Assembly: GCA_977016875.1 (NCBI GenBank)
Contig: CDRNST010000031.1
Coordinates: 806,001-870,000 of the forward strand
Source: Pavona decussata
Taxonomy: Eukaryota
Direction: 5' to 3'
DNA length: 64,000 nucleotides
Shown here: positions 1 through 64,000 of the stretch, piece by piece
Layout: the number at the start of each line of letters is the position of its first letter
How positions within the stretch are numbered: position 1 is the stretch's first letter
Notes under the pieces: model-generated
Told to the model about the DNA's origin: nothing
Databases searched by the model: none
The model's input: the letters and a program-made list of their open reading frames with translations, nothing else
Program-made: the position numbers and the translations under genes

Positions 1-23
1 ACAAGTGGGCTTGGAGCACGGGG
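1..23 (-). CDS. exon: start of FS13 (runs off window)
   Basis: Acceptor tctctttctgtag followed in phase 1 by (T)PCSKPTC, the same xPC-x4-C start as other FS exons. Confidence 0.7.
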
Positions 24-2811
24 CTACAGAAAGAGACTTGGTTAAGAAATTGAAATGCATCTAATCTGATAATAATTATCGGGTCCTGTGTTTTGAAGCG
101 TTTTGGATCCGAGTCTGCATGTGTAAAAATAAGGAGCCAATTACAAGTGTTATGGGGACGGTGGCGTTCGTGGCGTTCGATTGACCATAATCCACATTAG
201 GAGAAAACGGAATAGCCTCTAGAATTCTTGTTTCAGTAAATAAATTTGGGAAGAGGAATCTGCGAACTTTTGGCTCGACAAGATATTCAAATCCTAAATT
301 CAAACTCCAAAAGTCTCCTTTGAGAGATGCTTAGTAATCGATGTATGTATGGTGTTTGTAAGTTCTGCCTCTGGAGACTAAGAATGAAGGTAGACGCTCT
401 AATCGCTCATAGGAAATTGTCGATGAGATTGTCTTTTTGCACTCCTTATTAAGTTTAACCTAACACACTGATAGCCATAACAAAGACGTCTCTATACTTA
501 CTGCACGCTCCTTTACGCTTGACTTCGATTCTCTTCTTCAATTGACAAGCCGTCGCTTCCAGACGACATTGGTTAGGATACGTCTTCCCGTCGTCCCCGC
601 AGATAGCTCTGACGGTACTAGGACACTGGTCAGCTGAAGGGCACTGACATGTCGCCGTACCAGAGCCATCTTGTGCCACAGTACACGTGCCATAATAATC
701 CTGGCAATCTGAGAACGAGCATGGACCTGAGAACAAGCACATAAAACATTAATGGAAAGAGCCCGGCAAACTGTTCAGGAGGTATCACCATTTGCTCTTT
801 GACAAAGGAAACAGGATAACAGAAGTCAAGGCATGGTCTCCATCGAGGTTCCGATTTCATATTCTGAGCAATTAACAAGTTCCTTGCACTCACAGCCATT
901 TTTAGTTTCTAGTGCTCAGCACAGTGTAGCATCTATCTTTGGACATGACTTTTTTCGGCCCGCTATGTTAACGGCTGAAGGACCGTAAAACTGTCAAATT
1001 TCCACTTTTTCATAATTCACTCCTTGATGGGTCCTTGTCCATCCAGAATTTCTCGGCTTGATCGCAAGTTGGGAACATGTAAAACAATTTATCGTTCACT
1101 GAACGCAGCAACACAGTTTGATAATAAATAAATCCATAATCATCACGAAAATTCAAGGTCGACAGCAAGCAATTCAGTTAAGCTTAGTTACATCATTTCC
1201 AAAGACCAAAGATGGTCGCTTTGCACGTGGCACTGGAAAAGGATGTAGCCTTTTCTTATTTTCCTACCGCATTCTCCTTTGTGCTTCAGTGAAACATCTT
1301 CTCCATTGGCGCAGCTTTGAGCCTTCAGCTTACATTCATTCTCATATGTTGCACCATTGGTGCCACATACGGGATCTGTTACATCCGGGCATTCCTCAGT
1401 GCGTGGGCACTCGCAGGCAGTGGAGCCATCAGGTTTGTTTTTGCAAACTGAATGATGAACACAACGAGCAGCTTGGCAAGGATCTGAAATTTATCACGAA
1501 CAACGAACTGTTAATAGCGAGGATGAAAAGCTTTAAAAAGACATGACGAGTAAAGGAAAAGAGAGGTAAAATAAAAGAAATACCCCGGCCTTACCACACA
1601 CTCCCTTTTTGTCCACTACAAGAGGCTGTTCTGTCTTGCATGCCTCCACTCTCAGTCTGCAGGGGTTAACGTAAGTTTGCTTGTCGCTTCCACACACTGG
1701 ATCGTAATCTCTGGGACAGTCATCTTCTGTCGGACACTGACAGCTGGGTAGCTTGAGAATACTGGCCACACACTTCTTGCCGCCAGAACAGCGAGTGTCT
1801 TTACAAATTACTGAAAAAAAAAGTCAGTTATGTCACCAAAGAACGGATATTAAATGCCTAACCAATCGCTCAACAGTAGATACAGTGAAAATAACTGCAA
1901 AAATTATCAAAACTAACAATATATATTTAGCATTGGCCACTATGAGGGCTGTGAGGGAATGTAATCATCCGGTGTCAAACAGGTATGAGTTCCAGTTGCA
2001 GATTTAATATTTTTGAAATTATTGCTATGATATAACAGCTTTTTCCAATGATGATGCAATACAGCTTCCAAGAATGGCCAAAATAAACACGTTAACACCC
2101 CGCCGAAATTAGGCTGATTTAGCCACAGAACAGGAACGTCATTTGAGGACGCGAGAGCTCGCGGAATAGTCTGGACACGAGTCTATTTCGACTATATATG
2201 GGCATTCTTGATGCACGCGCTGTTGTCAACTGACGTTCCCGTTCTGTAGCTAATTCAGCCTATCAATAATGATAAGACCGTTTTCGATGAAAACAAAAAA
2301 GGTCAAAATTGTATTAAGTATAATGTCTGTACCACAAGGTCCCGGATGTTCCACTCCAACAGTTGTGTTTATAGCACATGACTCCGCTTTCAGAATGCAC
2401 TCATTTAAGTAGGTGATCCCATCGGTTCCGCATACAAGGTCCTTCTCCTTGGGGCAGTCCTTCATTTCAATGCACTTGCAGGATGATGTGCCGTCTTTTT
2501 GAGCAATGCAAACTTCGTTGTCACGGCAACTATCCAGGTTACAGACACCTACGTAAAATAAATAGTAAATTAGTATTCTGAATGCTTTACCAATACAAAA
2601 CGAGATTTGTTGCAATTAATTTGTTTCATTTTTTCCACATTCAAGAGAAACCACCATGTTCAGAATAGGAGTATGCGTATGCTCAAATGGGATCATGCGT
2701 ACTTATACTCTATCCACTCTTACTCCACGTCTGGAGACATCGCGGAATATAGAACTTAGTCAACGTTTGCTAAATTGCAAACAACAAAGTGGTTTTGCAT
2801 TTAAAGGAAAA

Positions 2812-2856
<45 letters not shown>

Positions 2857-5800
2857 GAAAATAGCGAACATAGCGGCGCTCAGAGTTTTGCGACTACACT
2901 TCATGTACGAAGCGATTTCTCGCAATCTCACAATAACTGTTAATCAGAAAACAGGTCTCAGCCGATCAGACTGCGTTAAAGATAGATTGGAAATTTTTTA
3001 ATCAAAGTCAACTCACCGCAGGGGCCGACGTGACGCTCTTGAATTTCCTTATCATTGGCACAAGCAAACACATCTAAGAGACATTTGTTGATGTATGTCT
3101 GTCCGTCTGAGCCACACACACCATCGCCATCTTTTGGACACTCGTCTTCGGTCCGGCATTTGCACGTGACCAAGCCATCAAAGTCTCCTGTGCAGGCGGC
3201 ATTGTTTTTACAGTCCTTCGCAAGGTCACATGGCCCTGTAAGAATAAATGTATACATTAATGAATACAGTAACGATGTTTACGTTTGTTTAAGGTTGCCG
3301 GTTCCCAGGCTGCCAGATGTCTTTTAACGGTGAACTACTGATATCATCGATAACATCAGGTAGATTGTACATGCAGTTGCTGTTAAGGACGGTGCCTACT
3401 AATAACGAAGTATTTTCGCCCGGTTTATCACTATGCGGGAAAAGCAGATCTTGGTAACGGCTATTGAAAAAACCAAAAAGAAAATTGGGGGTAATCACGC
3501 ATTTTTTAGAGATAACTAAGCAACACTTATTCTAAAAAGCAGCAAAATACAAAGCAATGTATGGCGCTTTTTTCCCAATTGAAGGTTTAACAGTTATCTC
3601 TGAAAAATGCATGGTTGCCCCCAAGTTTCTTTTTGGATACCAAAATCACTTGCTAAGTTCTGCTTTCTCCGCATAGTTTTAAAGCGCGCAAAAATATCCC
3701 TGTAATAGTAGGCACCACCCATAGGAAACCCGAGTATCTCGAGATGCGCAGAACGTATGCGCAGTAGCAAAAGTAGGCACCGTCCTTAATTGGCTAAAAT
3801 ACTGACCCCAGACTCACGAAGTCCTCGTAAGTTGAAGGGGAAGTATCACGCAAATTTGCTATCATTTCAAAACCCAAAAATGTTTTTCTGTCAGCAGAAA
3901 CAACGAAATAATTGTCAAGTTTGTTATAAACTATCACCCTAGTACAATAAAATTGTCGATTAGTGCCTCTGGCCAGAGACAGAGAAGGCCGGTATGGATT
4001 GAAATTTGAAAAATGTTGGGCTAATGTTTTTCAAGTTCTCGCATTTTTGTTTCAAAAATGCGCTAGAGCAGATCACGAGTTGTTCCTTTCAAGAATTGAG
4101 TTGATGTCTTTCCTCTCGTCATTCTAGAATTATTTGTCAGCTGATTGAAGGTCTTATTTCAACATTTTTAACAAAAGATATCAAAAACCCCATGATACTT
4201 CCCCTTTACGTATTGTTTCTTAACAAAAGCCTATTGTTGGAATAACAACACACTATTCTTCAGAAACAATACTTAGAATACATCTAAAAAGTAAGAAGTA
4301 TTTGCGAGTTGAAACGATTAAACGGTTGAAGATATTAGAGGCATCTGTACTTTGACTGTATCACGATAGCTAAACATTGTTAGGACAACACTCACCGCAA
4401 TATCCATCCATAACGGCGTAGACAGGCATGTCTTTTTCACAAGCCTTTGCTTTCATCGCACAGTCGTTCAAGTAAGTCTTCCCATCGCTGCCGCAAACGG
4501 TATTAACAGTAGCAGGACAGTCTCTTTCATCCGGGCATCTGCATTCAGGGTTACCTAGGGAGTCTACCACGCATGTCTTTGGTTCTTTACACTTCACGCC
4601 AGCACAGGGCTCTGAAATCACATGGTCATGAAAAAGTCATGATGTGATCATGAGAATGTAGTCTTACCACGACTTGCCGGTATGTAAAAACAATACTACA
4701 GAACATATTTTTCTGGTAAAGGTTGTTGCAGGTTATTCTGCTACGCTCGCAAGAAAAAATGCGCCTTCAATCAACCAAAACTTGTGCTTGGAATGCATGT
4801 TGGCGTGAGTGAATCCAACTGTAAAAACTATTGGCAGACATGTTGGTTAACTGTTAGCCACAAATAGCATTAGTGCTCAATCTCGCGAATCTCTCGTGTG
4901 AAATATGAATCAGACAGATGGCACCAGTCTCCAAGCAGCTCAGTGGTTGGAGCATCCGACCGGTGGACGGAGGGTCCTGGGTTTGATTGCCGTCTGTGAC
5001 TCGGATTTTCTCTTCGTTCTTCTTTGCCCACACTCGTGATATATCGAGCAACACTTCTTTCGTATTGGTCAACAAAGTTCTGGTTTTGTCGAACTAGCAT
5101 TTTAAATTTTAGTGCTGTTTACTCGAAACGCCAGAAAGAAGAATTTAGGGATGTGGTCAGAATTATGCTCGAACAGGACCTATCAAACCACAAAATAGAT
5201 GGTGGTCTCTTCCTGCACTTCCCTACTCAACCTGAAAATGTGGTATCTTTATTGTATAGCCACCCTTCTATCCATCAGTCTCATAATGGCTCCTTTTAAG
5301 CACCAATTTACAAAATGTCCACTTTTTCAATTAAATTGTTCTTTGTAATATTATTGCGTAGTTTTACGCCGTTTTTTTTTTGGCCGTTTGCTGACGGCTG
5401 ATATCTGCACCTACTGTAAGTCCAACTGGAACCACATGGTGCTCAAACGGAGAAAAAATGGAACTAAAATAGATCTGAAACTTACCACACTTTCCAGTTT
5501 TCTGCTCATCAATGCTACCATTCACCAAGCAATTTGCAACATCCAAATAACATTTGTTTATGTAAGTCTTATTGTCGTGTCCACACACTGGAGCTGCTGT
5601 CCGAGGACACTCCCTGACATCCTTACACAAACACTGTGCCTTGCCCTCCTTCACTTCACAATGCGCATGCTCTTTACACATCACCCCAGCACATAACCCT
5701 ACACAAACAAACAAAAATGTAAAGTTGAAGGCTTAGGACTACATTAAACTGCTTAACATGCAGATGTCTAGATTACTCCTCATCAAACCCTGGTGAGAGA

Positions 5801-8800
5801 GGTCGGGTCTGGATGAAGTGGGCGGAGATGACTATCGGTATACATGTCATGTGACCACTTACCCACTGTCTTTTAATCGATAAAGACAAAGGCAAGACAT
5901 GCAGAGCGAGTATAAACAGTCCTGAGTAAGACTAAGTAAGACTCATTATGACTAAACCAAGGTACGTATTTTGATTGGTTGACCCAAGCCGTGAAGCACG
6001 TCAAGAAACTTTTATTCTCAAGAACAAACCTGAATTTTTTATCATATGATTTGAACTTATAAGAGACTGTGGAGGAAATCCTTAAGTATAACCATCTAAA
6101 ATAAATCAATTCAAGCGGTGCTAGTCTCTGTAGCATGGCCGAGTTTTTTCGCTCGACAACAAGGGGGCGAAACCACGATTTCTACGACCCTTCGCCCATC
6201 ATACGAATGATAGCACCCGCTGTGCACGCTACGCGGTGGTGCTGTTTGTTTGTTAGCTGTAACAATGAAATTTGGCTTTTTTTAGAAATTTCATCCACCC
6301 TTTCACGAATGAAATGATTCTTATGAACCAAGAACAGCCCATAGCAATTCGTGTTTATCAAAATGCATTTCATAACCATGACGCATAAGAACAAGGAATC
6401 TGGTGGACTTACCACAAGGCGCCAAATTAGTTACTGTGATGTCCTCTCCTTTAGCACAGGCTTCTACTCGTAAAGCACAGTCATTGTGATATGTTTTGCC
6501 ATCACTACCGCATACTTCATCTTTTCTGGGCGAACAATCACTGATCTTTGGGCACACACATTCAGAATCGGTGTAACCAATTGACTTACATCGAGCATAG
6601 TACGCACAGTCTCTCTTGTCACAAGGGTCTGTAAATAAAGAACTGCACCCTTAAAAGCGTGTTTGGAGACATTTTGTTGGAGCTGTTACGTGGGTGAAAG
6701 AGGTCAGCGGGAAGAGAATCAAAATTGAGAACAGGAATTGAAATGGAAGCAGCAGCCGTCCAAACTGCTTTTACGCTACAATACATTTTGAATCATTCAA
6801 CGTGTGAGAGCTAAATACAAGCACAATGTTACAAAACTATGGAGGGAAGGAGAGAAGTTTGTATATGTGTTTTAACTCATATCATTATCATATCATTATC
6901 ATGTGTGGGTAAACTGTTCTTTCCGGTTCGGCGGGATAATTTCGAGAAGGCACGAGTAGGCATTTTCCGACAGCAGCATCTGTATACTGAGCAAAATGTT
7001 TGGAGCCAAACTAGATCGTTATTATGATTAAAAATGGACGATACATGCTGCAGGTTCTGACCCAGCTCAGCTTACCTTTACAAGTGTCCTTAACCAGTCG
7101 GGCGCTCTTGGAAACAAGTTTATCCACCGAGTCTACTGTGTGGACGTGATTTCTTGAATTGGCGATGCTAAGGTGCCGAGAAGAGGGCGTGTTCACACCA
7201 ACAGCGAGAACAAATACCTGTATGTTCCTGTTCTTCAGAGGGGCGACGGCTGTCTGTAGATCCTCAGTGATCTCACCGAAAACAATCACAATAAGAGACT
7301 TGGGAACCTGAAATAAATGTCATGCTGTTTCTGTTACATGGCAAAATTTAAAAATAACGAATAGAAAAACGACTGGTTCAGCCTTGGGCCATAAAGGAGA
7401 CAATTAAGCAAGCAAAACTGCGAAGGACGACTCTTAAAGAAAGACGAAAAACCCAAAATGGCTTGGATCCTCGCGTTTTGGTCACAGATAAAGCAATTTT
7501 TACTTTCAGGCAACATTTGAAAGCTGGGAGAATATAAGGAATTTTAATGGTCAAAACCTGTGGGGCCCCAAACCTTCTTAAGTGTACCATTTAATATTTC
7601 GGGTCAGATTGCCAGTTTTATCACGGTTTTTGACTAAAGACTCCTTGTTTATCTGAAACGACGAGCTGCCATAGTCCTGGTGAACGCAAGAGAAAAATGC
7701 TGGGTTCAGGGCTAGACAACTGTGGCCATGGCTTCCCTCCAGGGAAGGAAGGTAATTAGAGATATTTAGAATGACGTCCGCGGCAAACGGCAAAAATGAC
7801 CACCGTGACCTTTTTTGTCCTTCATATGCCGCTCGCTGTTTTAAGTTTCTCAGTAAAATTGAGTAGTTTTGCATTAACATCAGAAGCCAAAATAATTTTG
7901 CACTTTTCTCCTCTGTTTACTCGTTTTATCTCCTTTATGTTTAGTCGTAAACGCGAATCTAGACCTCTCAAATAACGCTCAAATTCCTTCAAAACATGGG
8001 CTGGGTATGATCCAAAGAGGAGAGTTGAAGAGCGTGAACAGTGAAATGTACATTGTGGGAAATAAATGATACGATTAATAAGTAGTGGGTTGTTTTAGTG
8101 CACAGTTCCGATTGCCATCCAAGAACGTAAAACTTACCCCACTCCTTCCCCCGTTCTTAAATATCTCGAAGGCCTTTCGAAGCATATCACTAAGCCTGCT
8201 GGTCGGAAGTGAAGGAAGAACTTTCTCAGCTCGTAGTTCATCCACCTTGGCTTTGAGTGGTCCTGGCTGACTATATTCTGTGAGTTCAATATCCTTCCTC
8301 GCGGTCTCCGAGACAGTGATGAGGCCAACATGTGTCTGGGATTGGGAAATTGTGAAGCCATCTATCATAGTGAGGACAAAACTCTTCTGCTGGTCGAAGG
8401 CCGAGGGTTTTATTTCGTAGGAAGAATCCAGAGCGAAAACCACATCCATTGGGAATGGACACGCTAAAATGAAAGCAAAATAATTATTAAGTAGGGTTTA
8501 AAAGAATCGCGTCAGTTTCACAACATTTGTTCTGTTTAATGAAACTATTCTTATAGCAGAGTCAAAATACAAAAGGGAAAACAGTTCTGACTTTTCAAAA
8601 AATAATTGTAAAGAATTCATAAATCGGCCCAATTCTAAGGATCATTAACAGAAAGAAGTACTCCCCTATGATTTTACTCATTGTCATAGCCAATGACGTT
8701 TTAGCTTGTGAGGCTATGGATGAATTCATGAAAAGCATCTGCTATTCAGCAGAAGTTCATGTCATGCTGTTGCTTAAAAAAATGCTTCTCTCTACAGTAA

Positions 8801-11800
8801 TGAATTTGTCACATTAGGAAGGATAACAGTTCAAAAATGATAAAGACACAAACCTGCTGGGATAGAACAAAGAGGTTCCACCAGAATAGCACCCCTGGTT
8901 GGTTTACATCGACCACACCAGCCTCCACACTTGGCAGATATCACAGCGTCGTCATGTGACCTACTGTAATCCTGAACCTCGAAACCATTCGGGAATCCCT
9001 GGAAGGACCAGCTCACATCTTCCCGAACTCGCAGCCTCGTGCCTCGCAAATCAACCTTGAATGATCCCTTCCTACATTTACCCGGGTTCACAGAATAGCA
9101 GTCTCCAGCCGAGCCATAAGCAACGTCGCTTCCTTCTTCCGTCTGTGCAAAGGTGAAATCATCGCTGACAAGTTTCATGGTGAGAGCATTAAGACGTACT
9201 TTAGTAAAATTTGTGGCACCTCGCTCAGCGTACAGCTCTGTTCGTGCAGGCCCACTACAGCTAAACCTATCCTGAAGCCGCTCATGGTAAATGATAGCAT
9301 AGTTATTCTTGGCACCAGACTCCAGTGTGATGAATTCCTGGGGCATTCCAGACGCCATGCTGTGACAGTAAACTCTGATTGGGTCTTTACATCTGTCGCT
9401 CACGTGAACAAGGTAGTGACCGTCAGATGAATATCCAGATTTTTTAACTTCAACGCAGTTGTGGAACTCTGTTGAAATTTAAACAAGTCAGCGGCATAAG
9501 GGTCTGAGGGAACGGACAATTTTGTCAGTCTTCAAGAGAACATGCACTTCTCCTTGGGAAACTTAACTAACGTGTGGCGAAGCGCTTACACACACAACGA
9601 TTAACTCCTCCACTAAATGTTTGATTACTTTATTAAAGCTTACATCTTGAACGAAAGGTTTTAAAAACGAAGTGACACGCATTCTTAACTTTTAACTGCA
9701 GTTTGCCTATTCCACGTCAATCGTGCCTTGACTGACTCTGTTTTGGATTAGGCAAAACAAACTTAGGAAGTCCAGCCAAATCATCTTCCCATAAAAACAA
9801 GAAGATTCAGTAGATATAGCTACGGTAAAGTAAACCGAAATCTAGAAATAAAAGGTTAATTGGGCCAACAGCTTAAGTTGATCATTTGTATTCTTGAAAT
9901 ATTATACTAAAACTGCAAGGAGGGATAACATGTTGATCACTTTTTGTCAGAAAGACAACCAACCTTCACTTGCTGTAAAAGGTAGTTTTTCCCCTTCTTT
10001 TTCCTCTTCTCCAGGTTTCGGTAACACCACAAGATTTCCCCCTGATGCAATGGCCTTGAGTTTGTCCTTGTCCGTTTTATCCGGGTCATCCGTGATAACA
10101 ACAGGAATGACCTTGACTGGCCTCTCTCTTAACTTGCTAATCTCGTTTTTGATTTCTGGCGAGTTCTCATCAAAGACACCTTCGGTCATCACAATGAGAA
10201 TGTCCTCCGCGAATGGTCTCTCTCCGCGCTGTGTTATAAACACTTCCTCTCGAACCTTTTTCAGAGCACCACTCAATGTCCCTGGGCGAGACGCAGATTG
10301 AGGAATATTTTCAGCAAAAGTTTTGAAGTTATCTTTGCTATACTTGTCCCTGAAAAAGACCCTAGCATTGGCAGGTCCGTTGTAGTCCACGAGAGCAAGA
10401 AGCGTTTTGCTCGGGGATACCTCGTACTCATCCACGATTTTCTTTAGCATTGCTACCATTCTGCCAAAGTTGGTCGAAGCTTTAGGACCGGAGGCACCGA
10501 TGACAAAGGCCAGATCAACAGCTTTCTCTGCGAATAAGAAGATGCAATATCATGGAAGGTGTTAGTCGTCGCGGTTTGCAATGATGTCTAAGTTAATCGT
10601 TGCTCTCATGATGTGGAACGCAATAATAGAAATTTACGCCGATCCACATGTAAGTGACTCAATGGTAAGAGTTTGGTGTCAAGAAGGTGCCATTAACCAA
10701 GAAAAAAAAAAACCGTTTATAAATGAACGGAACTAACACGCGTAAATCAAATGTTAAGGCTTGATCATTATTTGAACTTACTTTAAGAATCGTCCTTCGC
10801 TTATAAAACTTATGAGAACGATGAAGATCGTCACGAATTAAAAATAACTCATCATATATAGGGTATGTTAGCTTAATTTTCGTTAGAGTGCCGGCTTAAC
10901 TTATTACTGAATGTTGTGTTGCTAGACTAATGACATACATGGTGAATCAAAGAGTTTACTCTGCAGTTTACGGCCTCGTAGGTTAGTCAACACTTATGAC
11001 AAATGTAGCAAAATGAACAATACATTTGACGCTCAATGAGTTTTTCTGTTAATTTAGAGACATTTCCATTTTTAAACTTACGACAAATTCCTGTCGAATT
11101 CACGGCGGTCATTTTCTTATCCATACAAGCCTCTGCCTTGAGAGAGCATTCATTTGGATAAGTCACCATGTCACTTCCACAAACTGGTTTAAAAGGCTCC
11201 GAGGTACAGTCGTCCACACACTGACATACAGCTGTGTCATTGGGTAAGGCAGAACACTTGGCGTGGTAGTCGCAACTCACATTCTTGCAGGGATCTGTAG
11301 ACAGAACACAAGAAAATTAAACGTTTCTTTTCCTTTAAATATCGTCCAATGAGGTTCCTCCTTTTGAGCCGGGTGGGTGCATTCGACCATTTCTGATAAA
11401 ATGACTCAGAACCACTGCTTTAAATTTCTTAGGCAAACAAAATTTCGTTCAATTAATTATTGACTACAAGCAACAAATAGAAGTGTTGGTGTGTCTTGAG
11501 GAAAGGTTCTTTGGTATTCAACAATTAAACACCATTAAAACACCATATGTGAGATTTGACTAAACTATTAAGCGTAATGGTGTAAGGAGAGGTTGGGAAT
11601 TTATTTCTTTAATTGCGTCAATGAATTCCTAGTCTCATATTCACAACATACATTTAAGATTGCCGTCAAAACAGTACGGTCGCTCTGTTGCTGATTGTAA
11701 GAGAAGTATTTAAGTCACTGCAGAGGAATTAAGAAAGTTCATAAACGTCAATTAATGTCACTTACAGCCGATCGTCCTTTGAAGCACATATCCTTATAAA

Positions 11801-14800
11801 AAGGAAGGAAACAAAAACAGAAAGGCGAGAAAGGAAGCAGAGAAGACAAACGGACTTACTACAGTGTCCATTGTACTTCGAGGTGATTCGGTTACGCAGA
11901 CGACAAGCGTTACTTTGAAGAAAGCACTCGCTGAAGTAAGATTCCCCATCACTGCCACACACTGGTCTATAAATCTCCACACAAGAATTTCGGCATGCGC
12001 AGTAAGGAGTTCCGTCCTTTGTAAGTCGACAAGTGCCGTAGAATGAACACGTGACTCCAAAACAAGGAGTCGGATCTTGAAAAAGGTTAAAAATAGATGA
12101 TAGAGAAAACAGAAATGCAAGTAGAATGAACCGACAACAAATATAGAAGGACTACAATAGAAAAGAGAGGTAGAGAAAGAAATTCAGCACATATATGGTC
12201 AACTTACTACAGGGCTCTTTAGATGAGACAGTAGTGTTCTGTTTCATGAAACAAGCCTCTCGCTTAAGATAACACTCATTCCAGTATGTCCTTAAATTAG
12301 ACCCACAAACAGGAGAGAAAGACGCTGGACATAGATCAGAGCACTGGCACCTGGCAGACCCATCTCTTTGAGAGATGCACACAGCGTAGTACGCACACTC
12401 AGTAAAGTTACAAGGATCTAAAGTAACGAACCGAGAACAAAGACATGAAGGAAATTATTCAAAACAAGAGATGTTATTTAAAGATCATTAAATGGAGAGT
12501 GCAACAGCTTCTTCATTGATAATGATCATCGCTCTCCGCACCAGAAGGCACTTAAGGCCAAAACTAATATTAAGGTACAATAAAGCATTTTACCAAGAAT
12601 GACCAGCAACAGAAAAGTTCTCAGTAGGACCAGTTCCCTACTCCACAAACTTTTGTTGGAGGCTTGGGTGCTCACATTTTTTTTTTTTTTTTTTGGGGGG
12701 GGGGGGGGGTGTAAAATTGAAAATGGATTGTTTAAAATGTATTTTAATAAATTAAAATTTGTTAAACGTTTATCACGTTAGTGTTCGTCGATCTTTTCCC
12801 GTAAAAAAGAACAGGGATTCTTTCCTTTGAAACGATTCTTTATATTTTACTGGAAAAGATCCACAAAAGGCCTGGCGCACTTCAGTTCATTGGCTTGTTG
12901 CCGTGATAATGTTTGCCTATCGTTCTGGAGGACGAGCATAGATTAATATTAGTTAATATTAGACCATGTTAGCAGTGTATGTTTTAACCTTTCTTTCTAA
13001 ATGCATTTATAACGACTTTTCTAATCGGATTTTTTTCACAACATTTTATCTTACCGATAAAAACTTGAGCCATGATCTTGCTAACAAGCTTTTCCGGTTT
13101 GTCCACTTCTGGAACAGGGTCAACGATAACATTGGGAGCTATCATTACGAGATCAGGGTCTACTTCTTGTCCAACAACAACTGGTATCACCTTGAATTGA
13201 ATACAGCTTTGTTACTTAACTGACTTATCTTTCTGGATCATTATTTTTCAAAACATTAAAGATCGATTTTTTTGTTCTTCTGATTATTTTCCTTTATTTA
13301 TTTCCTACTTTATACGGAGACAAAAAAATGTTCATAATTTCCATAATTTCAAAATCTCCCGATCCGACAGGATTGTTAAAATTGACACGATAATTAACAA
13401 TTACTCACCGAACTGGAGGTGGATAGTGGTGAATATTTCGGTATTTCTACCACTTTTCCCCTGACACTGAATATACGAAATCGGTCGATAGTGCTTTTCA
13501 TGCGCTTTAATTGGATTTTCAATCTCTGGCTGGTATTTGCTATACAACTCCTGTCCTAGATTCCGTGGGCGGGTGTTTACGAAAATGGTTAAAAACCTAG
13601 CGGATTATTGAAGCTGGCTATCCAGCGGTTTGGTATACACTAAAACAAGTATTCACCTGAGTGTAAGTGAATAATAGTCTATATTTACCTCGCCCCTTCG
13701 CAGTTTTGGTAAATATCCCCCACAGTCCATCTTCGCTTCATTGAATAACTGCTGATTATTATGCTGTTTTACGATGAGCTCTGTCGATCTGCGCAGCAGA
13801 TGCAAATGAATGCTGTGATGTCAATGAGGAAATCAACCTTACCTTCACCCCTGAATTCTCCAAGTCTTTTGCATGGCGTCTGACAAAATTCTCATCTCCC
13901 ACAGTGTCCCTATCCACAATCACCACCAAGAACTTCCGTACCCCAGGTCTCTCGCCCTCATAGCCTGGCTCAAAGAGCTCGGCAGCCTTCTCCAATGCCT
14001 TTTCCAGGTTTGGCTGACCTCCAAGTCTCACAATGATATCTAACAATCCCTTCAGTTGGTCAGGGCTATTAAAACTCTCTCCAAACGTTATTTGCACATC
14101 CGGTTCGCTTCCAAACACCATAAATGCATAATGCACATAGTACATGCCATATTTGTCGATTATGTACTTTATGGCATCCATCATGTAGTCGTATAACTCG
14201 TTTGCTTTGGTGCTTGTTGCAGAAATGGCGAAAGCTATGTCAATAGGATATGTCACCAGTACTGAAATGAAAGAAGCCAAGGAAAATTAACGGCATTCGG
14301 CCAAACTAGCACTTCCATAAATGAAAAGGTTGGCATAAAGATACTAAATTCATAAAACCCACTGCAAATAGATACCTTTCAAGTCGCAGATCTGGTCAGA
14401 AATGTTTGTGGTGACGGACATGATGTCATGGAAGGAGGTCACGTGATAAGCATAGTCTTCGTTGGAGGCGATTGTCTTCACACTGGGTTCATCCATATCG
14501 CTCCCGACCCCCACTACAAAGAGTGTGGCATCAAGAGTCTTTAAAGTCCCGGACAAGCTTTTGAACGAAGCAATGTCACTTTCTTCTTCTGCAATAACAA
14601 CCACGGCCTACACCAAGAGATATAAGAATGCTTATTATTAAACACTGGATCGCTGGATAATGAAATTCCAGAGTTTTGATTAGTTTTGTGGCCATGGGAA
14701 TTCAGTCATTATACCATGCCCGAGAAATAGTTTGTAACTCTGTGGGATGTTAAAGAACCCACTCACTGTTCGCAAAGAGTAGGGGACGTAGTTCCCGGTG

Positions 14801-17800
14801 TTGTGGTCTGGTCGTTGTGCGTATATTATCATGGTTGGGTGGGAAAATGCTCGGAGATATTGGCTGCATTAAGCTACTCTACAATCCGAGGGTAAATAAA
14901 GATTGATGATGATGATGATGAAGGATTCTCTGTTTGCTTACACATGAATAAGGCATAAGAATGTAAATTTTAGAAACATATCTGCTTTGGGAGGTCATAT
15001 TTCGCGGGACCTTATTGGAGTCACGTGGTACCCACTACAAATGGGTATGGTTCTGACAAGACCAACCTTCCATTTTATCTCTTTTTAACTTTCGGAGCTT
15101 AGATATTATCACTTTTCTTTCTTCACCAGCACCCAATGACCTTTCGACACTGCTGATCACGACTTGCGTCAACCAACTTTCTGGCTTAACTGACTTAAAA
15201 TCAACACAGGCTACTGAATGAGATAACTAGCCTACCTTTCCCACGTCTGGCCTCAAGAATTGTTCAACACTTGGCAATTGACCGCTTGAGCTTTCGATGA
15301 AGGATTCAAGTGTTTCGAGGCTTTCTAGATCATCCAAAGGCAGCGTGCTATTATTTAATAAACCCACTGCCAATACTCCCACACGGGTATTGTTTGTACC
15401 CATGACGAATCTATCGATTATGGATTTGATGAAGTTCATCTTCTCTGATATGTGTCCTCCAGCAACGACAAACAGCAGGTCAACAGAGTTGTTACAAACT
15501 AAAACAGTCAAAATTTTGTTAAGTGAGGGAAATGTACCATACACAAGCGTTTTTACCGTAAACTGCCGCTTATAAGCGCCCCCCCCCCCCGGTTGTAGGC
15601 CCATCCACCTGTAGACCAAAAAATTCATCCGATTAAGCCCCCCCCCCCCGATAAAAGCCCCCCTCTACTTTCGTTCGTGTTGTTACTTTTAATTTTGTTC
15701 CAAATATTGACGTTTTAAAGCTTAATTAAAAAGCAGTAAATAAAAAACGTATATCGATTGACACTGCTATAGCTCGTTTCGAAACTTTTTTTATTCCAAT
15801 TTTAACCCCCTCCCCCCGCCCCCCGCGGATATAATCCCCTCCGTTTATAAGCCCATCTAAAACCTCTTACGAAGTTCTGATTTACTGGGTTTGCAGCTGT
15901 TTTACAAGCGTAATTAACATATGAGTGAGCATTCAAATCAAAATGACTGCTTAACAACGTTGATTTAATTTCAACATCATACCTTCACAAACACCACTCT
16001 TTACAGGAGCGAGATTCGTCTTTGTTCTGCACGATTCGGCCATCATGCTGCAGTTATTAGGGTAGGTATTACTGTCGCTTGCACATACAGGACTGTAGGT
16101 TGGAGGACAGTCTTCCCGGCATACACATCCTGCCGTGCCATTGGGGTACCTGACACACTTTCCATTAAAATCACATTCCTTGATCAAGCATGGGTCAGAT
16201 AAAGCTATGACAAAAACATATGACGATAAAGTACAAACGCCAATCACATGCAGTTAGGAAACTGGTTACATTTTAGCAAGGTACTTTAAAGAGAGTATTC
16301 TGAAGGCTAGAGGCCGTTTACAAGGTCAAGAGTTAAAATCCCGTGGATCAAAGACTCAAGATGTCAAGGTCCCAAAGGTGATAACGAAAAGATGCTGACC
16401 CTGGCTAAATGGAGCCCTGTAGTAGCGCCGTGGACACTGAGAGCCCTCAACTTCCTGTCTTGGAGCATTGGAGCCCTAAATATCCTTGGGACCCTGAGAT
16501 GTCTCATCCACGTGACATACTAAGTGCATACTACTTGTATTAATACTACGTTTGTAAGTTGTGCTGACTGTTAAAATCACCTTCATAGGGGAGGTTAGTA
16601 GCCTATTAGACCACTGTTGCATGAAGCAACCAAAAGTGCAACTACTCGCACCCTGGATGGGATACTAGGCTCGTCACATTACGGTAGCTTAGAACCCATT
16701 CAGCACCTGGGTGTAATAACAACTATGGATCTCGTATTAAGAAGAAAGAAAAACGCAAATTGGGATCCCACATTAGCCGAATCCTTATATTCATTCCAGC
16801 AGATTGAAAAGGCCAACATGAGTTTAAATAACTCGGTTGTTATACCATCTGCTTTTGGACCGAAATAAAGACTTCAGAACTAAAGATGACATTGGAAACA
16901 TATTATATGAAGTATAAACTAAGAAAGGTCGTTTTAAAGTGCACCTAACCCCCAAATTGTTTTTCGCTGAAATAAATCTTTGCACCTCTTCGAAACGCAT
17001 GCCTTTTTGCGCCTTTTTTCAACCAAATCTTGACTTTTTATAGGCCGTAAAAGTAAAATCTAGCCATCATCTGTCCCATGACCGAGCTGGTAAGGGGCAT
17101 GGGTCTATTCGTTACATGACGTCACAAACTGCTTTGCATGCATTTTCACAAAGACTTAATACTATGCAAATGAGTTTGTGACGTCAAGTAAGGAATAGAC
17201 CCATGCCCCTACCAGCTCGGCCATGGGACAGATGATGGCTAGATTTCGTAACTTTTACAGCCTATAAAAAGTCAAGATTTGGTTAAAAAAGACGCCAAAT
17301 AGCGCAATATGTTTCGAACAGGTGCAAAGATTTATTTAAGAGAAAAAAATAATTGGGGGGTTAGGTGCACTTTAAATCAACAATATCACTTTTGATGTTT
17401 ACCTAACGCCATCATGGCCCAAATTCGTTTTCCAACACCTTTTGGGTCAGCATCCTTGTCAGTTTTCACGATTTTATCTTTGTCCTTGTCCGGGCTGAAA
17501 GTTGTAAGCTCGTCCGGATCGGCTTCATTTCCAATAACCACAGTAACAAACTTCACCTTGCCGTCCTCGTATTCACTCGCCAAATTGTCAATTTCACCTG
17601 CCGTATTTACTGTCTTACGGTCAATCATGACCACGATTATCTTCCGAGAGTCTGGTCGCGCACCTCCGCTGGGTTTGAAAAACAGTTGCTTTGTAGTTTC
17701 CAGGGCATGAACCACGTCCGGTGATCCGGTAGGCTGTTGCGCTCCCTTTATAAGCGCTATTAGAGTATCTTCGCTGGTTTTTTGTAAAGGAAATATTATG

Positions 17801-20800
17801 TCGGCATTTTGCCCAAAGACTACCATTGCGTAAAGATGCTTTTTGACGCCATGTTCTTCGACGGTGTACTCGATGGTGGACTTTATGAGTTTAAAGTTGT
17901 TATCAGCGGTAATAGCTGTTGCGCTCACTACAAAAGCGATGTCTAACCTAGGGAACTTCGCTGTTTCTGAAATTAAAAAAATTATCATGAGTGACTATCG
18001 AATCAGACAACAGATTGAGGTCTTCCAAAAACTTCCAGTGGACAATTGCTAAAATAAAAAATAAACAAATTAAAAGTTTCTGCTGAATAAAACGTTTCAT
18101 ATGCAGCTAAATTCACAAACGAGATAAATCGCTACAGTAAAAGTTATGTTAAAATTACAATCTTTGTGAACTGCATATTGAAATTGCAAATTTAATAACT
18201 TACTATCCTTTTTCTCATCACATTCTCTATGTATATTGAGAGATAGCTGATACCAAACGAACGTATGTAAGTAATTAGTGCTAGTTATGTTAGTAATAAG
18301 TTTTGATCTCTATCATGTAGTTACCAGCAAGCAACTTGTCCTGTATCTTGTCTGCAATCTTTATCGGATGATCTGTGTCATTTGCCTTTACGACTTCCTC
18401 ATCAGGGAACTCCTTTTCTAGTTCAGAAACCGGTTTGTCGCCAATGGCAACAGGAATGACAACTATAAATTTCTTTATCAAGTCCTTAGCTGCGTTCTCA
18501 ATGGCTGGCTTGTCGCGACCAGTTGTGGCATCCGTGATTACAACAAGAACCTGAATAACAATAGATAACTGCCAATGAGCTTATAAAAATAAACGGAAGC
18601 CCATAAACATCGAGCTTTTATCCCATCACAAAGCTCTAAAACACAAGAAAAGAAGGAGAAAATTNNNNNNNNNNNNNNNNNNNNNNNNNNNNNNNNNNNN
18701 NNNNNNNNNNNNNNNNNNNNNNNNNNNNNNNNNNNNNNNNNNNNNNNNNNNNNNNNNNNNNNNNNNNNNNNNNNNNNNNNNNNNNNNNNNNNNNNNNNNN
18801 NNNNNNNNNNNNNNNNNNNNNNNNNNNNNNNNNNNNNNNNNNNNNNNNNNNNNNNNNNNNNNNNNNNNNNNNNNNNNNNNNNNNNNNNNNNNNNNNNNNN
18901 NNNNNNNNNNNNNNNNNNNNNNNNNNNNNNNNNNNNNNNNNNNNNNNNACAGAAGGAAATAGAAAATTCTGTGGTCGTTCAGCATGTCAAAATGACCAAG
19001 AAATTCTTCAATTCATGCTGTCCGTACAATAACAAATTAAAAAACAGACTGATGTGTCCTTACGAAGAGTATAGAGGCAAACGCTTGGCATCTGACGCCG
19101 TTATCAATAAGAAAACTTGGGTAATTATGGCGCGCTAGAAAATCGACAGAATAGCACGTACCTTTTGTGCATCTTTCCTTGCAGCATCACTTTCAAACAG
19201 ACTCTTGGCCAAAACAAGAGCCTTGTCCAAAGCGGGCTCGTCGTTATTAGGAGGGATAGAGCCAACATACATCTGTAACCTTCTTGGGTCACTGTACTTA
19301 TCTCTGAAGTGGACCTTTATGGAGGCATCCTTGCCAAAGACAATAAGCCCGTATCTGACGTTCTCACTGAAAAATCGCTCCATTACTTCCTTTACAACAT
19401 CCTGGATCAATCCAAAGTTGTTGTCAGTTGGTAATGCACTGATAGCAAAGACGAGGTCCAACTTTGGCACTTTGGGAGTTTCTTAAAGTTAAATAGATGA
19501 ATAGATTGACGGCGTTATAAGTGCGATTTGCAAATTACGTGTGTAAACTACTGTTGTTTTTTGGCTGAAATGTTTCTGAGAGTTTACTGCGACTATGAAG
19601 CATTTGTTGAGCGTTACCTAGGAAACACATGCGATGTGAGCAACAAACAGTGTCTGTTTAATAATTGCTTATGTATTTGCATGGCACTACAGTTCAAAAG
19701 TTGAATAAGGACTTCGATTCTATTATAAAAACACCTCTTTGACCGCTCAGGTATGGAACGCAATTTAGACCACGTGACGCAGAATTACAAAAAAACTGAC
19801 ATTACCTTTTAGAACTTTATTCATGACAGCTTTAGCGAGATCTGTTGGATCGACATCTTTTGGGACATCAACTAGCACATCTTTATACGGTGAAATCTCC
19901 TCTATTTCCTGAGGATCAATTTCATCACCAATGGCGACAGGAATAACCTTTACATCATCAATGTCCAGTTCTTGAGCCTCCTTCTCTATGGTCTTTTTGT
20001 CTCCTGTAGGCGACTTGTCAGCGATCACAACTAGTACCTTCTTAGCATCGCTGCGAGAACTCAATTGGAATATTTGTTTGGCCTCTTGCAGCGCCTTCTC
20101 CATAGCCGGTGGTCCTTGCTCAAGCTGTATGCTATCGATTGTAGTCAACCAATTCTCCAATGCAGAGAAGTTAGCCTGGAAGCTAAGCACTAACTTCGCG
20201 TCGGAACCATAAGTGATTACTGCATAATGTAGGTTACCTACACCGTATTTCTTTATTACAGATTTAACAGTATCTTTGATTTTCTGGAACGTTTCGTCAG
20301 CACTGAGCGCTGTTGCGCTAATAGCGAAACCCAGGTCGATCTTCTCTGTAATAACTGAATCTGAGGAAGAAGAAAACAAGTGACATATCATGATACTATT
20401 ATCTGACTTGGTGACATTAACGGACGCCTCAGGCAACCGATATCGACCCACTGTTGTTGTAATCTAATTCACTTAACCCATGAACAAATGAATGTCACTC
20501 TGAGTGGTCTCCAAATAAGAGACTTGTGTGATTGTTGTCTTTTTAACGTCTCGACCTAAGTCACGTCAAGGTACAGCTACTGCTGATGTCTAATCAAAGT
20601 TAGTTACTGGTTTATTTAACGATTGTAATTTCTGGGTGTTGAGAATTAAGGGTCTGACTTTCCACAATGCAGATCAGGAATCTGCCAACTGAGTCTTAAG
20701 TGGCCTCCCTACCATTAAGCACTGTGTCCACCAACTGTTTCACAACCTCCTCCACACTGCTCTTTTCTTCTGGTTTGATAACTTCCGGTGAAACAGGATC

Positions 20801-36677: not shown

Positions 36678-36738
<61 letters not shown>

Positions 36739-40813: not shown

Positions 40814-40852
<39 letters not shown>

Positions 40853-40925
40853 GCTCTTTTTTCTACTTTTAACTTGTAAATATCAATTTTGCTTGGAATA
40901 TTATAATAAAGAAAGATTTTATTTA

Positions 40926-40969
<44 letters not shown>

Positions 40970-41921
40970 TAATATTATTATTATTATTATTATTATTATT
41001 ACGGGTGGTTTCCTATACTTTGATTCTCCGGAAATCCTGCATAGGTACAAATCATCACTACGGATGTTACTGACCTTCCAAAACTTTCTCCATGATTTCC
41101 TCAGCTACGGCATCGGGGTTTTCAGTATTTGGAACGTCTATCAAATTGTCTTTTTCTGAAGTTGTTTCTTCGATTTCATCCGGATCAGCTTCTCTCCCAA
41201 AGGCAACTGGAATTACCTTGATGCGAGATCTCCACAGATCTTCTGCGGAATCTTTGACGTCTTCAAGGCTGCTATCGGACTGTTTGTCGGTGACAAGAAC
41301 CAACACTCTTTTCGCATCAGGCCGAGGAGAAAGCTCGAAAAGATTTCTAACTGCGTCCAGTGCACTTTCAAGGTTTGATCCTTCTCTATTTGTTGTCGTG
41401 TTTTGTATGATATTTTTCAGCTGCTCATCATTGACTGGTTGAGTAAAGCTGACCTTAACTGTAGGGGTGTTTCCAAACACGACAACGCCAAATTGGATTT
41501 TTCCAACTCCATACTTGGTTATGACCCAGTCAATAATGTCTTTCATTTTTTGGAAGTTTTCGTCTGAGTCCAAGGCAGCATTTGCACTGATAGCAAAAGC
41601 CAAATCTAAGTCACGTACCTGCGGGATGGCTGCAAGAAAGTAGAGAAAATGCTTAAAGTTAGAAATGTAAGGAGGTTATCATCCTGATGAATTTGTACCA
41701 GGCATATAAATTATGTTGTAGCACTGTTCCATTGTAAGTAATAACATCTTCGCTGTGATAAAAACGTTCATTGTTATCATGGGAGAAAACTCGAAGCTTG
41801 ACAGTTGAAAACACGTCTAAGCAAGAGTAGATAAACAGATCAAATAGAAGAAAGATCCCCGCAGTTACTACGCAACTTAAGCAGTCTCAAAAAGAAAGCC
41901 TGAAAAAAAAATTTAGGCTTG

Positions 41922-41967
<46 letters not shown>

Positions 41968-59900: not shown

Positions 59901-62900
59901 GTCTTCTTCAGTACTACCAGAACTGTTATCCACGATAATTACCAGAATCTTCTTGGCATTAATGCGAGCACCAGGTGCTTCAAATGCCTTCTTTGCTTCA
60001 GCAAGTGCTAGATCCAAGTCAGGTGTACCAGCAACAGCTGATAGGCTCTCAAGCTTCTCAATCAGTGCTTCTTCATCTGGGAATGTGTCTTGAAAGTCGA
60101 CAATTGTTCGTGTTTCTGCTCCATAGGAGACAACAGTGTAATGTATGTTCTCAGCTCCATGTGTTGACACAATGGACTGGATGGTATCTTTCATTAACTG
60201 CAGGGTGTCCTCTGCTTCTGTTGAGGAGGTACTGACTGCAAAGACTATGTCAATGTCCTCTCGGTCGAGTGGATCTGATACTATCAGAATAAAAAAATTC
60301 ATTATTTTACATCATATTAGGTCAGATATTATTGCTCGTATCAAGCTCTTGTGATATCTAACTGGGTTTTAACAATGGCAATTTTTAGGTTTAGAACTCA
60401 TTCATTAGCTCTCAGAGAGAACTTACTATTCAAGCAAATCCCGGAAATTACGAACTGAAAATCGACTAAAACGTGTAGAGAGGAATGCAGCAAATACAAC
60501 GTTTCGATGTCATTATGTTATCATTTTCAAGCTTATCCAGAGGCAACACTTAACTTTAAGCTAATTTATTGTAACAAAAAATTTGCCAAGATGCGCGAAA
60601 CCTTTTCTCATAAAAAAAAACACACTTACCCTTCAAGATTGTTTGAATTATCTGCTCCCCGGTCTCTCCTGGACCCTCGTCAGTGGTAGTGTTCAACGAA
60701 TCACCGTCTGTAGGCGTAAGACCTTCCAAGTCTTTTTGATCAACATCATCTCCAACTGCAACGGTTATTATCGTCACGAGCTCGTCAGTTAAGTCATTGG
60801 CAATGCCCTTTGCAGCCTCCTTATCTCCTGATGAATTATCGTCTGTGATCACTACCAATACTTTCCTTGCAGCTGGTCTTACACCGTCGTCTTCAATAAA
60901 CAGTTGTTTGGCTTTATGCAGTGCTTTATCCAATGCCGAATCCCCGGGAACGTCTGGTGCCGATCTCATCAGATTCACCAGCTGGTCCGGGTCTGTGACT
61001 CCGTCAGAAAATTTCAGAACCACCGAGGGTTCATCTCCATATTGAACAACTGCATAGTGGATCAGGTTTGTACTGTAATTCTGCATAATATCCATGATGA
61101 CGTCTTTCATGTATGAAAAGCTGTTGGAGGCTTGAGCACTCACAAGAAACATCAAGTCTATCTTTGGAAGCCACATTCTCTCTGTGCAAAAGAAAAAGTA
61201 GACAAGTAAGGACCTCTTTCAGCTAGAGAGTATTTTCACTGTTGATTACGAGAGGCGAAATTTGCTTCTACAGCATATGTTTTTCACGAAACTGGGAAAC
61301 ATTTGAGTAAGTCTGGCCATTCTCTTAGCCTCCTCATAAAATGCAATTTTCTTACAGCCAGTACTTACTTTTAAGCATTAAGTCCACTATCTTGTCTGCA
61401 AGGTCGTCAACGTCATCGTCCTTGCTTGCCTCAATTACGTTTTCCTTGTCTGGAGTTGTAACCCTCAGCTGCGGTAGATAAACTTCAACACCTATTCCGA
61501 CAGGAATCACCTCGATCTCTTCTTCTTCGAGTTCTCTAGCATTGCTCTTTATTTCCCATGGCTTGCTGTCAGATCGATCATCACATATAATAACAAGCAC
61601 TTTCTTCGCGTGTGGTCGCGCCTCTGCAAATACTGTCTTCGCTAATGACAGTGCTTGATCCAGGTCTGGTGTCCCGCTGTTTGGCGTTAAGTTGTCAATG
61701 AGTTGCTTCAGGTCGTTCAGATCTGTGATCTTTTCATCAAAGTTAAGCCTGACTGATGCCACATCTCCAAACACAATGATTGCAGGGCGTATGCTGTCAA
61801 CTCCATGCTTTTCAAAGATGGATTTTATCACTTGTTTCATAACGAAGAAAGTCTGCTGGGAATCACTTGCAGTGGCACTGATGGCAAACACAACATCTAC
61901 ATCTTGAATAGGTTTCGCTGAAAGAAAAAAGGAGAATGGCAAAAGTCATTGCTTAACATTTGTATTGCATTTGGTTCAATCTTTACTAACGGTGCTTTGT
62001 ATTCATTTAGCGGACAATTCGAAGTATTTCACTTTAATGTACTAGATGACTATACCTTCACCATGATTAACATGTAATTGGCCATTATACTTATATTTTA
62101 CCGCCAGTTAGGCCTCATTAAAACCGGCAAAATGTACCAAATCATTACCAATGAAAAGCAAATAGGGAGGGCACTTTTGGTAAGGTGCGGTTAGATTTGG
62201 CTCGTAATCGTATTACAAGCCAATATATTGATGTTGAAAAGCCCCTCCCCGCCCTCCCCGTTGAAGAAATATGCTATATAATGTTATCAATTATTTATAA
62301 TTATTTATAATTATTTATTTATGAATTATTATTTGTTACGAATTATTTATGAATTATGCTATATAATGCTATGAATTATTTAGCTATCCAGACAAATTGC
62401 TCCGCATGTTTATTTTTTCTTATCATGAAAATATATTGTATTTCATTCGAATAAGTGCGAATAAAATTGAATTGAATTGAATTAACTCAACAAGGAGCTT
62501 CGCTTGACAAGGGCCGAAAACTGAAAGTGAGTAACACGAAAGCGAACAGAAAGAGCGTCTTCCTGTGCAAATCGCATAATTTCGCTTAAGTTACCTTGTC
62601 TTATTTTGTCCATTATGTGTTCCCTTATCTTTCCTGGTTCATCAGTGTTTGAACAGTGTTTGACGTTTTTCTTAGATCCAGAAGCGATGGCCAATTCCGC
62701 AGAATCTGCTTCACTACCAATAGCAACAGCAAACACACGAATGTCTTTATCATCGAGATAATCTGCTGCAAGTTTTATTTCCCTTGGACTACTGCCTGAC
62801 TTGACGTCTGTGATAACAACCAACACTTTGTCGGCGTTGGGGCGACCGGGGATCAGCAGCTGCTCACCAAGCTGAAGAGACTTGGCGAGGTCCGGCGTAC

Positions 62901-64000: not shown

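Follow-up and report, generated by a model that had tools for sequence, protein, structure and literature searches.

The stretch of DNA examined here, referred to as the window, comprises 64,000 nucleotides of the coral Pavona decussata (assembly GCA_977016875.1, contig CDRNST010000031.1, positions 806,001 to 870,000). It carries a long series of exons for vWA, follistatin-like (FS) and GON domains that is probably the central part of one giant gene for a secreted matrix protein. The coding signal lies entirely on the minus strand. Domains were called with Pfam on open stretches exon by exon, together with a local vWA hidden Markov model (HMM) built from 11 vWA exons of the window and a local FS HMM. 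All searches were performed by single exon, and pieces of exons were joined only locally, in HMM-column space, for the comparison of domains. Exons were chained by a simple scorer of donors and acceptors that required continuity of the frame, independently of the model behind the original prediction for this DNA; borders lacking RNA support are predicted, with a possible error of a few codons. All ten of the ~200-residue exons tested matched Pfam PF00092 (VWA), with E values from 1e-14 to 1e-21. The cysteine-rich stretches of ~75 residues were identified as Kazal_1 or Kazal_2, the FS modules consisting of FOLN plus Kazal with 10 cysteines, and a GON match (PF08685) was located at 8834-9478 on the minus strand. 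The vWA HMM recognized 54 minus-strand pieces, corresponding to 41 vWA domains in the window, and gave no match on its plus strand; 37 of the domains are consecutive, from 64000 down to 17403. The FS HMM found 12 FS exons inside the window and one straddling base 1. The features are as follows, in window coordinates.

17403-64000, minus strand: in-window part of the vWA array, 37 vWA in 47 exons (Pfam VWA, HMM, phase-1 junctions); domains 20-56 of a run of 56, with exon 63859-64374 crossing the right window edge
18665-18948, no strand: assembly gap of N inside the phase-0 intron that splits vWA 36
15983-16204, minus strand: FS exon after the vWA array (Kazal_2, E 7e-11; both junctions in four of four RNA runs)
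14376-15498, minus strand: vWA 38, exons 15236-15498 and 14376-14607 (local HMM; RNA joints 15235->14606 and 14376->14261)
13055-14261, minus strand: vWA 39, exons 13843-14261 and 13055-13190 (Pfam VWA, E 1.6e-11; RNA joint 13841->13188)
12208-12417, minus strand: FS exon, probable cassette (Kazal_2, E 1.3e-7; 10 Cys, GTAAGT donor, phase 1-1)
11860-12075, minus strand: second FS exon skipped in RNA (FS HMM, E 2e-20; donor tgta/GTAAGT at 11860)
11082-11294, minus strand: FS exon (Kazal_2, E 4.9e-10; acceptor 11294 used after 13055, donor 11082 predicted)
9964-10527, minus strand: vWA 40, single exon (Pfam VWA, E 7.5e-20; phase 1-1)
8854-9468, minus strand: GON, single phase-1/phase-1 exon (PF08685, E 1.9e-53), second of two GON in the locus
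7076-8463, minus strand: vWA 41, exons 8138-8463 and 7076-7307 (Pfam VWA, E 1.3e-14; MIDAS Asp kept, LDSS)
1-6628, minus strand: first 9 of 28 exons of the FS run (Kazal Pfam, FS HMM; phase-1 junctions, donors of the form C+1nt/GTAAGT)
Predicted FS exons of this run, minus strand, none RNA-supported: 6413-6628, 5486-5698, 4396-4611, 3017-3235, ~2333-2548, 1595-1810, 1268-1483, 502-726, and 23 to past base 1

In our own splice chain, 68 exons overlap the window and together provide 25,815 nucleotides, that is 8,605 codons, with no internal stop. The order of domains is 37 vWA, FS, 2 vWA, 3 FS, vWA, GON, vWA and 9 FS. The original prediction, which had placed 68 phase-compatible exons in one frame of more than 8,500 residues with precisely this architecture, was reproduced by the independent chain together with the Pfam and HMM calls. 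Its block of three FS modules stands as encoded, but a single one is seen expressed, with the other two, both intact, skipped in RNA contigs. Introns between domains are all phase 1, those inside domains are mostly phase 0, and most vWA domains are each encoded by one phase-1 exon. At the assembly gap, exon 19162-19481 covers HMM positions 13-122 and ends at a phase-0 donor, and exon 18325-18550 covers positions 121-201 and begins at a phase-0 acceptor. The halves of vWA 36 are therefore complementary and add up to a complete domain, and the reading frame continues across the gap, which could still hide a small extra exon.

With 60 kb upstream and 40 kb downstream of the window, the analysis covered 164 kb in total. 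The claim that the frame is open at both window edges and that the real protein is larger was borne out, since the flanking DNA extends it in both directions. The predicted gene spans approximately -27,080 to +105,300, corresponding to ~132 kb and ~132 exons on the minus strand. Upstream, 19 further contiguous vWA domains bring the run to 56, and before them lie FS-vWA-FS-FS-vWA-FS-GON-FS; in total the upstream flank contributes a signal peptide with an NtA-like domain, another GON (98776-99414, outside the window; PF08685, E 3e-52), 5 FS and 22 vWA. The first exon, 105301-104905, is located ~41 kb past the right edge, begins with Met and a hydrophobic leader representing the signal peptide, and closes at a perfect phase-1 donor, cagGTAAGT, matching the next FS acceptor at 100399. 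Downstream, 19 further FS modules bring that run to 28, followed by LamG-EGF-LamG-EGF, the exons of which lie ~19-25 kb past the left edge of the window, and a last vWA. After this vWA there is a TAA stop, with ATTAAA 526 nucleotides downstream, so that both a signal peptide and a stop could be located in the flanks. The 131 exons after the first one amount to 46,104 nucleotides with no internal stop in a rough model; several FS donors were later shifted inward, and the true figure is a few hundred nucleotides lower. Junction phases in the chain are 104 of phase 1, 20 of phase 0 and 6 of phase 2. The predicted product has ~15,000-15,500 residues with 63 vWA, 37 FS, 2 GON, 2 LamG and 2 EGF domains, in the order signal peptide, NtA-like, FS, GON, FS, vWA, FS x2, vWA, FS, vWA x56, FS, vWA x2, (FS x2 cassette), FS, vWA, GON, vWA, FS x28, LamG, EGF, LamG, EGF, vWA and stop.

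It can be observed from transcript data that part of this chain is spliced as predicted. Fifteen runs of the same organism contain approximately one-fifth of the sampled words from 8000-17999, a proportion that fits transcriptome data because exons make up ~40% of that interval. RNA contigs of four runs from four studies were then mapped to one 6-kb tile, 12000-17999. Their joints fall exactly where predicted, at 17403->16204 (four of four runs), 15983->15498, 15235/6->14606/7, 14376->14261 and 13841/3->13188/90. All are GT..AG on the minus strand, and one contig of 2,017 nucleotides traverses six exons. A loose contig end at 17967 matches 18326-18355, indicating that the joint 18325->17966 is also used. 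The contigs thus bridge the second part of vWA 36, vWA 37, FS, vWA 38, vWA 39 and FS, with similar depth on every exon. The junction 17403->16204, one of those named in the original prediction, was present in the contigs of all four runs and demonstrates that the vWA array is truly joined to the rest. For two others named there, 9964->9468 and 8854->8463, the basis is phase, splice signals and a related assembly in which the order Kazal-vWA-GON-vWA-Kazal recurs.

Both ends of the predicted product resemble agrin. With an alignment of 16 coral homologues, the AlphaFold2 (AF2) model of the first exon reached a mean confidence (pLDDT) of 72.5; a single-sequence AF2 model, with a pLDDT of 48, was too poor and was discarded. 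The top four Foldseek matches of the retained model are the agrin NtA structures 1pxu, 1jc7, 1jb3 and 3i70 (TM ~0.59, probability 1.0, E from 7e-5 for the best to ~1e-4), followed by other NTR/TIMP folds. The nearest protein-language-model cluster of the same exon is 'agrin-like, NtA 98%' (0.95, 193 of 256 features shared). At the other end, the LamG exon finds its best PDB match in full-length agrin (8s9p, E 2e-26), with neurexin, pikachurin and laminin ranking lower. When agrins of four phyla (sea urchin, Lingula, octopus and mammal) were aligned with the locus by BLASTP, matches were confined to the FS and LamG/EGF exons. A genome-wide NtA family search did not recover the first exon. The sole Pfam-detectable NtA exon of the genome is located on contig C359 at 859020-859508 (plus strand, 34 bits) and has its own signal peptide; BLASTP revealed no similarity between it and the first exon. 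That locus was considered as a conventional NtA-FS agrin and ruled out, no FS or vWA exon being present within -30/+50 kb. The original prediction had called an agrin-like label misleading, a verdict that rested on the window. Outside the window, the NtA-like fold and the LamG/EGF tail match agrin best, and in this respect the verdict is not supported. Its warning about labels is justified by public annotations, in which parts of the gene go under the names 'agrin-like', 'ADAMTS9-like' and 'collagen alpha-6(VI) chain-like'. The locus is best described as an agrin-type frame hugely expanded with vWA, FS and GON modules, and not as a canonical agrin.

The vWA domains of the array are old. Among 40 single-exon domains, the mean pairwise identity is 32%, with a range of 16-45%, which excludes recent amplification or an assembler artefact. 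A weak three-domain periodicity is present, with an identity of 0.357-0.372 at lags 3, 6 and 9 versus 0.333-0.352 elsewhere (permutation p = 0.0006 for 17403-51420; 0.008 when the whole array of 56 domains, extending to window coordinate 91265, is taken), and points to an ancient duplication of three-domain units. In 59 of the 63 vWA domains the first Asp of the metal-ion-dependent adhesion site (MIDAS) is replaced, usually by Ser, the array consensus being DLAFAISAT. It is kept in the remaining four, and the full DxSxS occurs in the C-terminal vWA only. The best PDB match of an array domain is the mussel byssus protein PTMP1 (4cn8, E 3e-11), followed by VWF A3 (~2e-5). The vWA domains of both PTMP1 and VWF A3 bind collagen.

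Closest sequences fall in stony corals, as judged from cluster look-ups. In a related assembly (ENA ERZ25067889), the GON is 77% identical and stands in the same Kazal-vWA-GON-vWA-Kazal x4 order, and two GON exons are found 144 kb apart on one strand. A second contig of that assembly holds the NtA-like exon, the array exon e9 and the GON that lies inside our window (GON-B) in the same order and strand. Both e9 and the first exon have counterparts of 59-94% identity in many coral assemblies, and conservation of e9 ends at the exon borders. A homologue search with e9 returned genomic open reading frame (ORF) calls, not transcripts, and these give no evidence for junctions. In a homologue search with a 1113-residue Acropora model described below, Kazal-rich agrins dominated and no longer orthologue surfaced. 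The GON exon was also searched against 1.84 billion representatives. No full-length relative emerged from this search, the matches being either fragments or GON mosaics of an unrelated kind; Pfam showed neither vWA nor Kazal in the seven long top matches that were checked. Elsewhere, predicted animal proteins combine GON with partners such as C-type lectin, kringle, WSC, F5/8C, SUEL lectin, D8C, EGF arrays and an ADAM-type protease, and outside ADAMTS9/20 it seems to be a module that is shuffled freely. Literature on GON with vWA and Kazal, cnidarian agrin with vWA, vWA in Acropora or collagen VI, the Nematostella matrisome and coral skeletal proteomes did not describe the architecture. The original prediction had recognized no described family here, and our protein and literature searches likewise returned no characterized protein of the same architecture.

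Taken as a whole, we consider it probable that the 64 kb of the window form the middle of one giant secreted matrix gene, in which an agrin-type frame was expanded by duplication of phase-1 exons. The domains and their order, the frame, expression, splicing at ~7 junctions here and at ~10 orthologous ones in Acropora models, and a conserved locus order are shown. We infer a single full-length transcript, and likewise the binding partners and tissue role proposed below. Several observations weigh against this reading. RNA of this species shows approximately 7 of ~131 junctions, and the array interior (e10 to ~e78), the run of 28 FS and the FS-to-LamG junction are drawn from phase, splice signals and open frames only. 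Among the 609 proteins returned by the GON search, none is longer than ~2,800 residues. The first exon gave no match to Pfam PF03146 (NtA) at E<=0.01 and no relevant match to solved NtA structures when compared by phmmer with PDB sequences. Laminin-EGF and SEA exons were not found when four full agrins were compared by BLASTP with every open stretch of the 164 kb; two LamG domains are present and a third was not found, a vWA occurring instead. Furthermore, the closest Pocillopora GON (63% identity) sits in a small separate PAN-vWA-GON gene, and the 1113-residue end of an Acropora muricata gene model could be that of a real short isoform.

These last points bear on the strongest alternative, which we nevertheless regard as unlikely, namely that the locus is a cluster of several genes on the same strand. 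These could be, for instance, an agrin-like gene of ~1,100 residues running from NtA to FS, at least one gene for the vWA array, a unit of vWA-GON-vWA and a further agrin-like gene with FS and LamG; their exons would be phase-compatible since all are phase-1-built. The A. muricata RefSeq model, XP_067051278.1 ('agrin-like', 1113 residues), follows the first 10 predicted exons one by one, in the same order and with 56-88% identity, and would favour such a cluster by ending after the ninth or tenth exon; no encoding contig is on record for it. Its end arises by reading 18 codons through a conserved phase-1 consensus donor, G/GTAAG, which argues against a genuine gene boundary. The Acropora digitifera annotation contains two models for the region, the first being XP_015778938.1 ('ADAMTS9-like, partial'), which spans FS-GON. 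The adjacent XP_015778939.1 ('collagen alpha-6(VI) chain-like') consists of GON-FS-FS-vWA-FS, then the array exons e9 and e10, and joins FS exon e8 to e9/e10, thereby spanning the point at which the A. muricata model ends. The array of 56 vWA is consequently bridged at both borders, vWA 37 to FS by RNA contigs and e8 to e9/e10 by the A. digitifera model. In the same model the block of FS e8, vWA e9 and vWA e10 is present twice in tandem and e3-e5 are skipped; the doubling could be an assembly duplication, a true local duplication or a model error. The free-standing Pocillopora meandrina gene (CALNXJ010000006.1, 552 residues) also speaks for separate genes. It lies beside a histone H2A gene with no vWA or FS arrays within 10 kb, was rejected as an orthologous full-length model on account of its small size and the absence of the array within 10 kb, and its vWA-GON unit may be a detached copy. 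No giant model was present among the protein libraries searched, and prediction carries most junctions: ~10 orthologous ones are contained in Acropora gene models, and most of the ~131 have neither transcript nor homologous-model support. Against a cluster, no internal exon combines a start codon with a leader and none ends in a stop, the signal peptide being confined to the first exon and the stop to the last, and contig depth is alike over all exons of the mapped tile.

A second alternative, to which we assign slightly less weight again, accepts one locus and holds that the ~15,000-residue form is seldom or never produced and that a family of much shorter isoforms arises through internal promoters, polyadenylation within introns and extensive cassette skipping. 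Exon skipping does occur at this locus. A loose contig end at 13055 matches 11265-11294 exactly, revealing a joint 13055->11294, and RNA depth is zero over 12000-12999 in four of four runs; transcripts therefore skip the FS exons 12208-12417 and 11860-12075, which are intact and are probably cassette exons. A retained intron forms the end of the A. muricata model, and every domain exon is phase-symmetric, so that any subset would remain in frame. In the mapped 6 kb, however, all other predicted exons are included and no alternative joints were seen. Moreover, the 63 vWA and 37 FS modules keep open frames and conserved cysteines or cores at ~32% identity, which argues for selection on each. An assembly artefact or a decaying pseudogene array, as the N gap and the known assembly risk of long tandem domain arrays might suggest, is very improbable and was rejected, because repeats 16-45% identical in protein cannot be confused by an assembler, 46 kb of exon sequence is free of stops, transcription and splicing were observed, and the exons are 60-94% conserved across many coral assemblies with conservation ending at exon borders.

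Features that the predicted product shares with agrin include secretion, tandem FS modules with 10 cysteines and skipped cassette exons; the predicted NtA/NTR fold at its N terminus is matched best by agrin NtA, and its C-terminal LamG-EGF repeats have agrin as the best solved match. The 37 FS exons score above the Kazal_1/Kazal_2 cut-offs, are recognized by the FS HMM and align with agrins of the four phyla. The coral locus differs in its 63 vWA and 2 GON, which are found in no agrin, in having 37 FS versus 9 and 2 LamG versus 3, in lacking laminin-EGF, SEA and the Ser/Thr-rich region in the BLASTP comparison with the four agrins, in its extra C-terminal vWA, and in its length, ~7 times that of agrin. 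With collagen VI alpha-3 and other vWA-rich collagens it shares tandem vWA domains mostly without a complete MIDAS. Arrays of vWA in collagen VI have a beads-on-a-string geometry (PMC3919171, PMC3220584), and the up to 10 consecutive vWA of COL6A3 are the known extreme in the collagen VI literature (PMC3220584), compared with 56 in the coral. No Gly-X-Y run of at least six triplets was detected in any frame of the 164 kb, and neither a Kunitz nor an FN3 tail was seen in the locus; a collagen identity was rejected on the absence of Gly-X-Y.

The GON domain, present twice at E ~1e-52 to 1e-53, is shared with ADAMTS9, ADAMTS20 and GON-1, in which it occurs once, at the C terminus, whereas both coral copies are internal. 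Two ADAMTS9/20-like proteins (1711 and 1774 residues) match only the two GON exons of the locus (E ~1e-30), and with these queries no reprolysin, disintegrin or thrombospondin repeat was found. An ADAMTS protease identity was therefore rejected, and the absence of both collagen Gly-X-Y and a metalloprotease, claimed originally for the window, extends across the 164-kb locus. PTMP1 and VWF, the closest solved relatives of the array domains, have two and three vWA, respectively, and both lack FS, GON, LamG and NtA; collagen binding by the coral domains is putative, and the adhesion motif DxSxS...T...D is not found in the coral array. Among cnidarian proteins, the agrin-like skeletal proteins of Corallium are described as secreted with long Kazal/FOLN arrays (PMC7853314), and the WAP/vWFA repeat protein NV2.11346 of Nematostella as secreted with extensive vWFA repeats (PMC12549020). 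Compared by these descriptions, neither combines NtA, a vWA array, GON and LamG or attains a comparable size in the main texts of the two papers.

A mechanism may be proposed from the roles that such domains have in other proteins. The product would be a secreted matrix protein resembling beads on a string, lengthened by duplication of phase-1 module exons, with repeats that are old to judge from their mean identity of 32%. Its NtA-like head may anchor the molecule to laminin of the basal lamina, and the LamG/EGF tail, together with the one MIDAS-complete terminal vWA, may bind cell-surface or matrix receptors. Between them, the 56 vWA domains of the array, which lack MIDAS, would provide a spacer of sub-micrometre length and a multivalent, metal-independent rod that may bind collagen or matrix. 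The FS array would form a second spacer, perhaps binding proteases or growth factors. Symmetric phase-1 exons would permit tuning of length by exon skipping, as seen for the two FS exons. The filament or adhesive scaffold of the original prediction is a possible role for the product.

More broadly, we give roughly an even chance to the proposition that stony corals make one agrin-derived protein of ~15,000 residues with 56 consecutive vWA domains, among the largest animal proteins, serving as a sub-micrometre tether from the basal lamina to the cell, the mesoglea or the skeleton-forming matrix, and missed because annotations split it. Other cnidarians are possible makers as well, since a jellyfish protein carries the same FS-GON-FS module (Kazal-GON-Kazal). 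If one gene is involved, this would be the largest agrin-family protein known to us, and its vWA run would be more than five times the longest cited for a characterized protein (10, in collagen VI alpha-3, PMC3220584). It would illustrate the reach of phase-1 exon duplication, by which a matrix protein can be stretched with each module remaining under selection. For coral biology, it is a candidate long-range tether or scaffold in the basal lamina, mesoglea or calcifying matrix. For the evolution of agrin, this one coral locus brings together a head resembling NtA, FS arrays and a LamG tail of agrin type, in a genome whose only Pfam-detectable NtA exon, at another locus, has no FS or vWA exons nearby. 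The gene would so far have gone unrecognized, every annotation found splitting it into agrin-like, ADAMTS9-like and collagen VI-like pieces, and orthology tables, matrisome lists and skeletal-proteome searches built on current annotations would see several unrelated small proteins with misleading names.

Several further elements were observed in and around the gene. In the intron between vWA 37 and the following FS exon, an element of ~400 bp at 16980-17376 is represented by at least 400 candidate genomic copies, 91-94% identical. The element also aligns to its reverse strand (~85%) and thus looks like a palindromic miniature inverted-repeat transposable element. RNA-contig depth over it is 100-260, compared with ~5-20 on exons. 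Inside vWA 38, summed RNA-contig depth over the intronic region 14600-14999 is 55-258 with many loose ends, presumably reflecting another expressed repeat. Close to the left edge, a ~100-bp stretch at 170-270 has dozens of copies of 73-82% identity on many contigs and looks like a short interspersed repeat. Finally, an uninterrupted ORF of 1,741 codons at -37731 to -32509 (minus strand), 5 kb past the stop of the gene, may be a transposon or an intronless gene.

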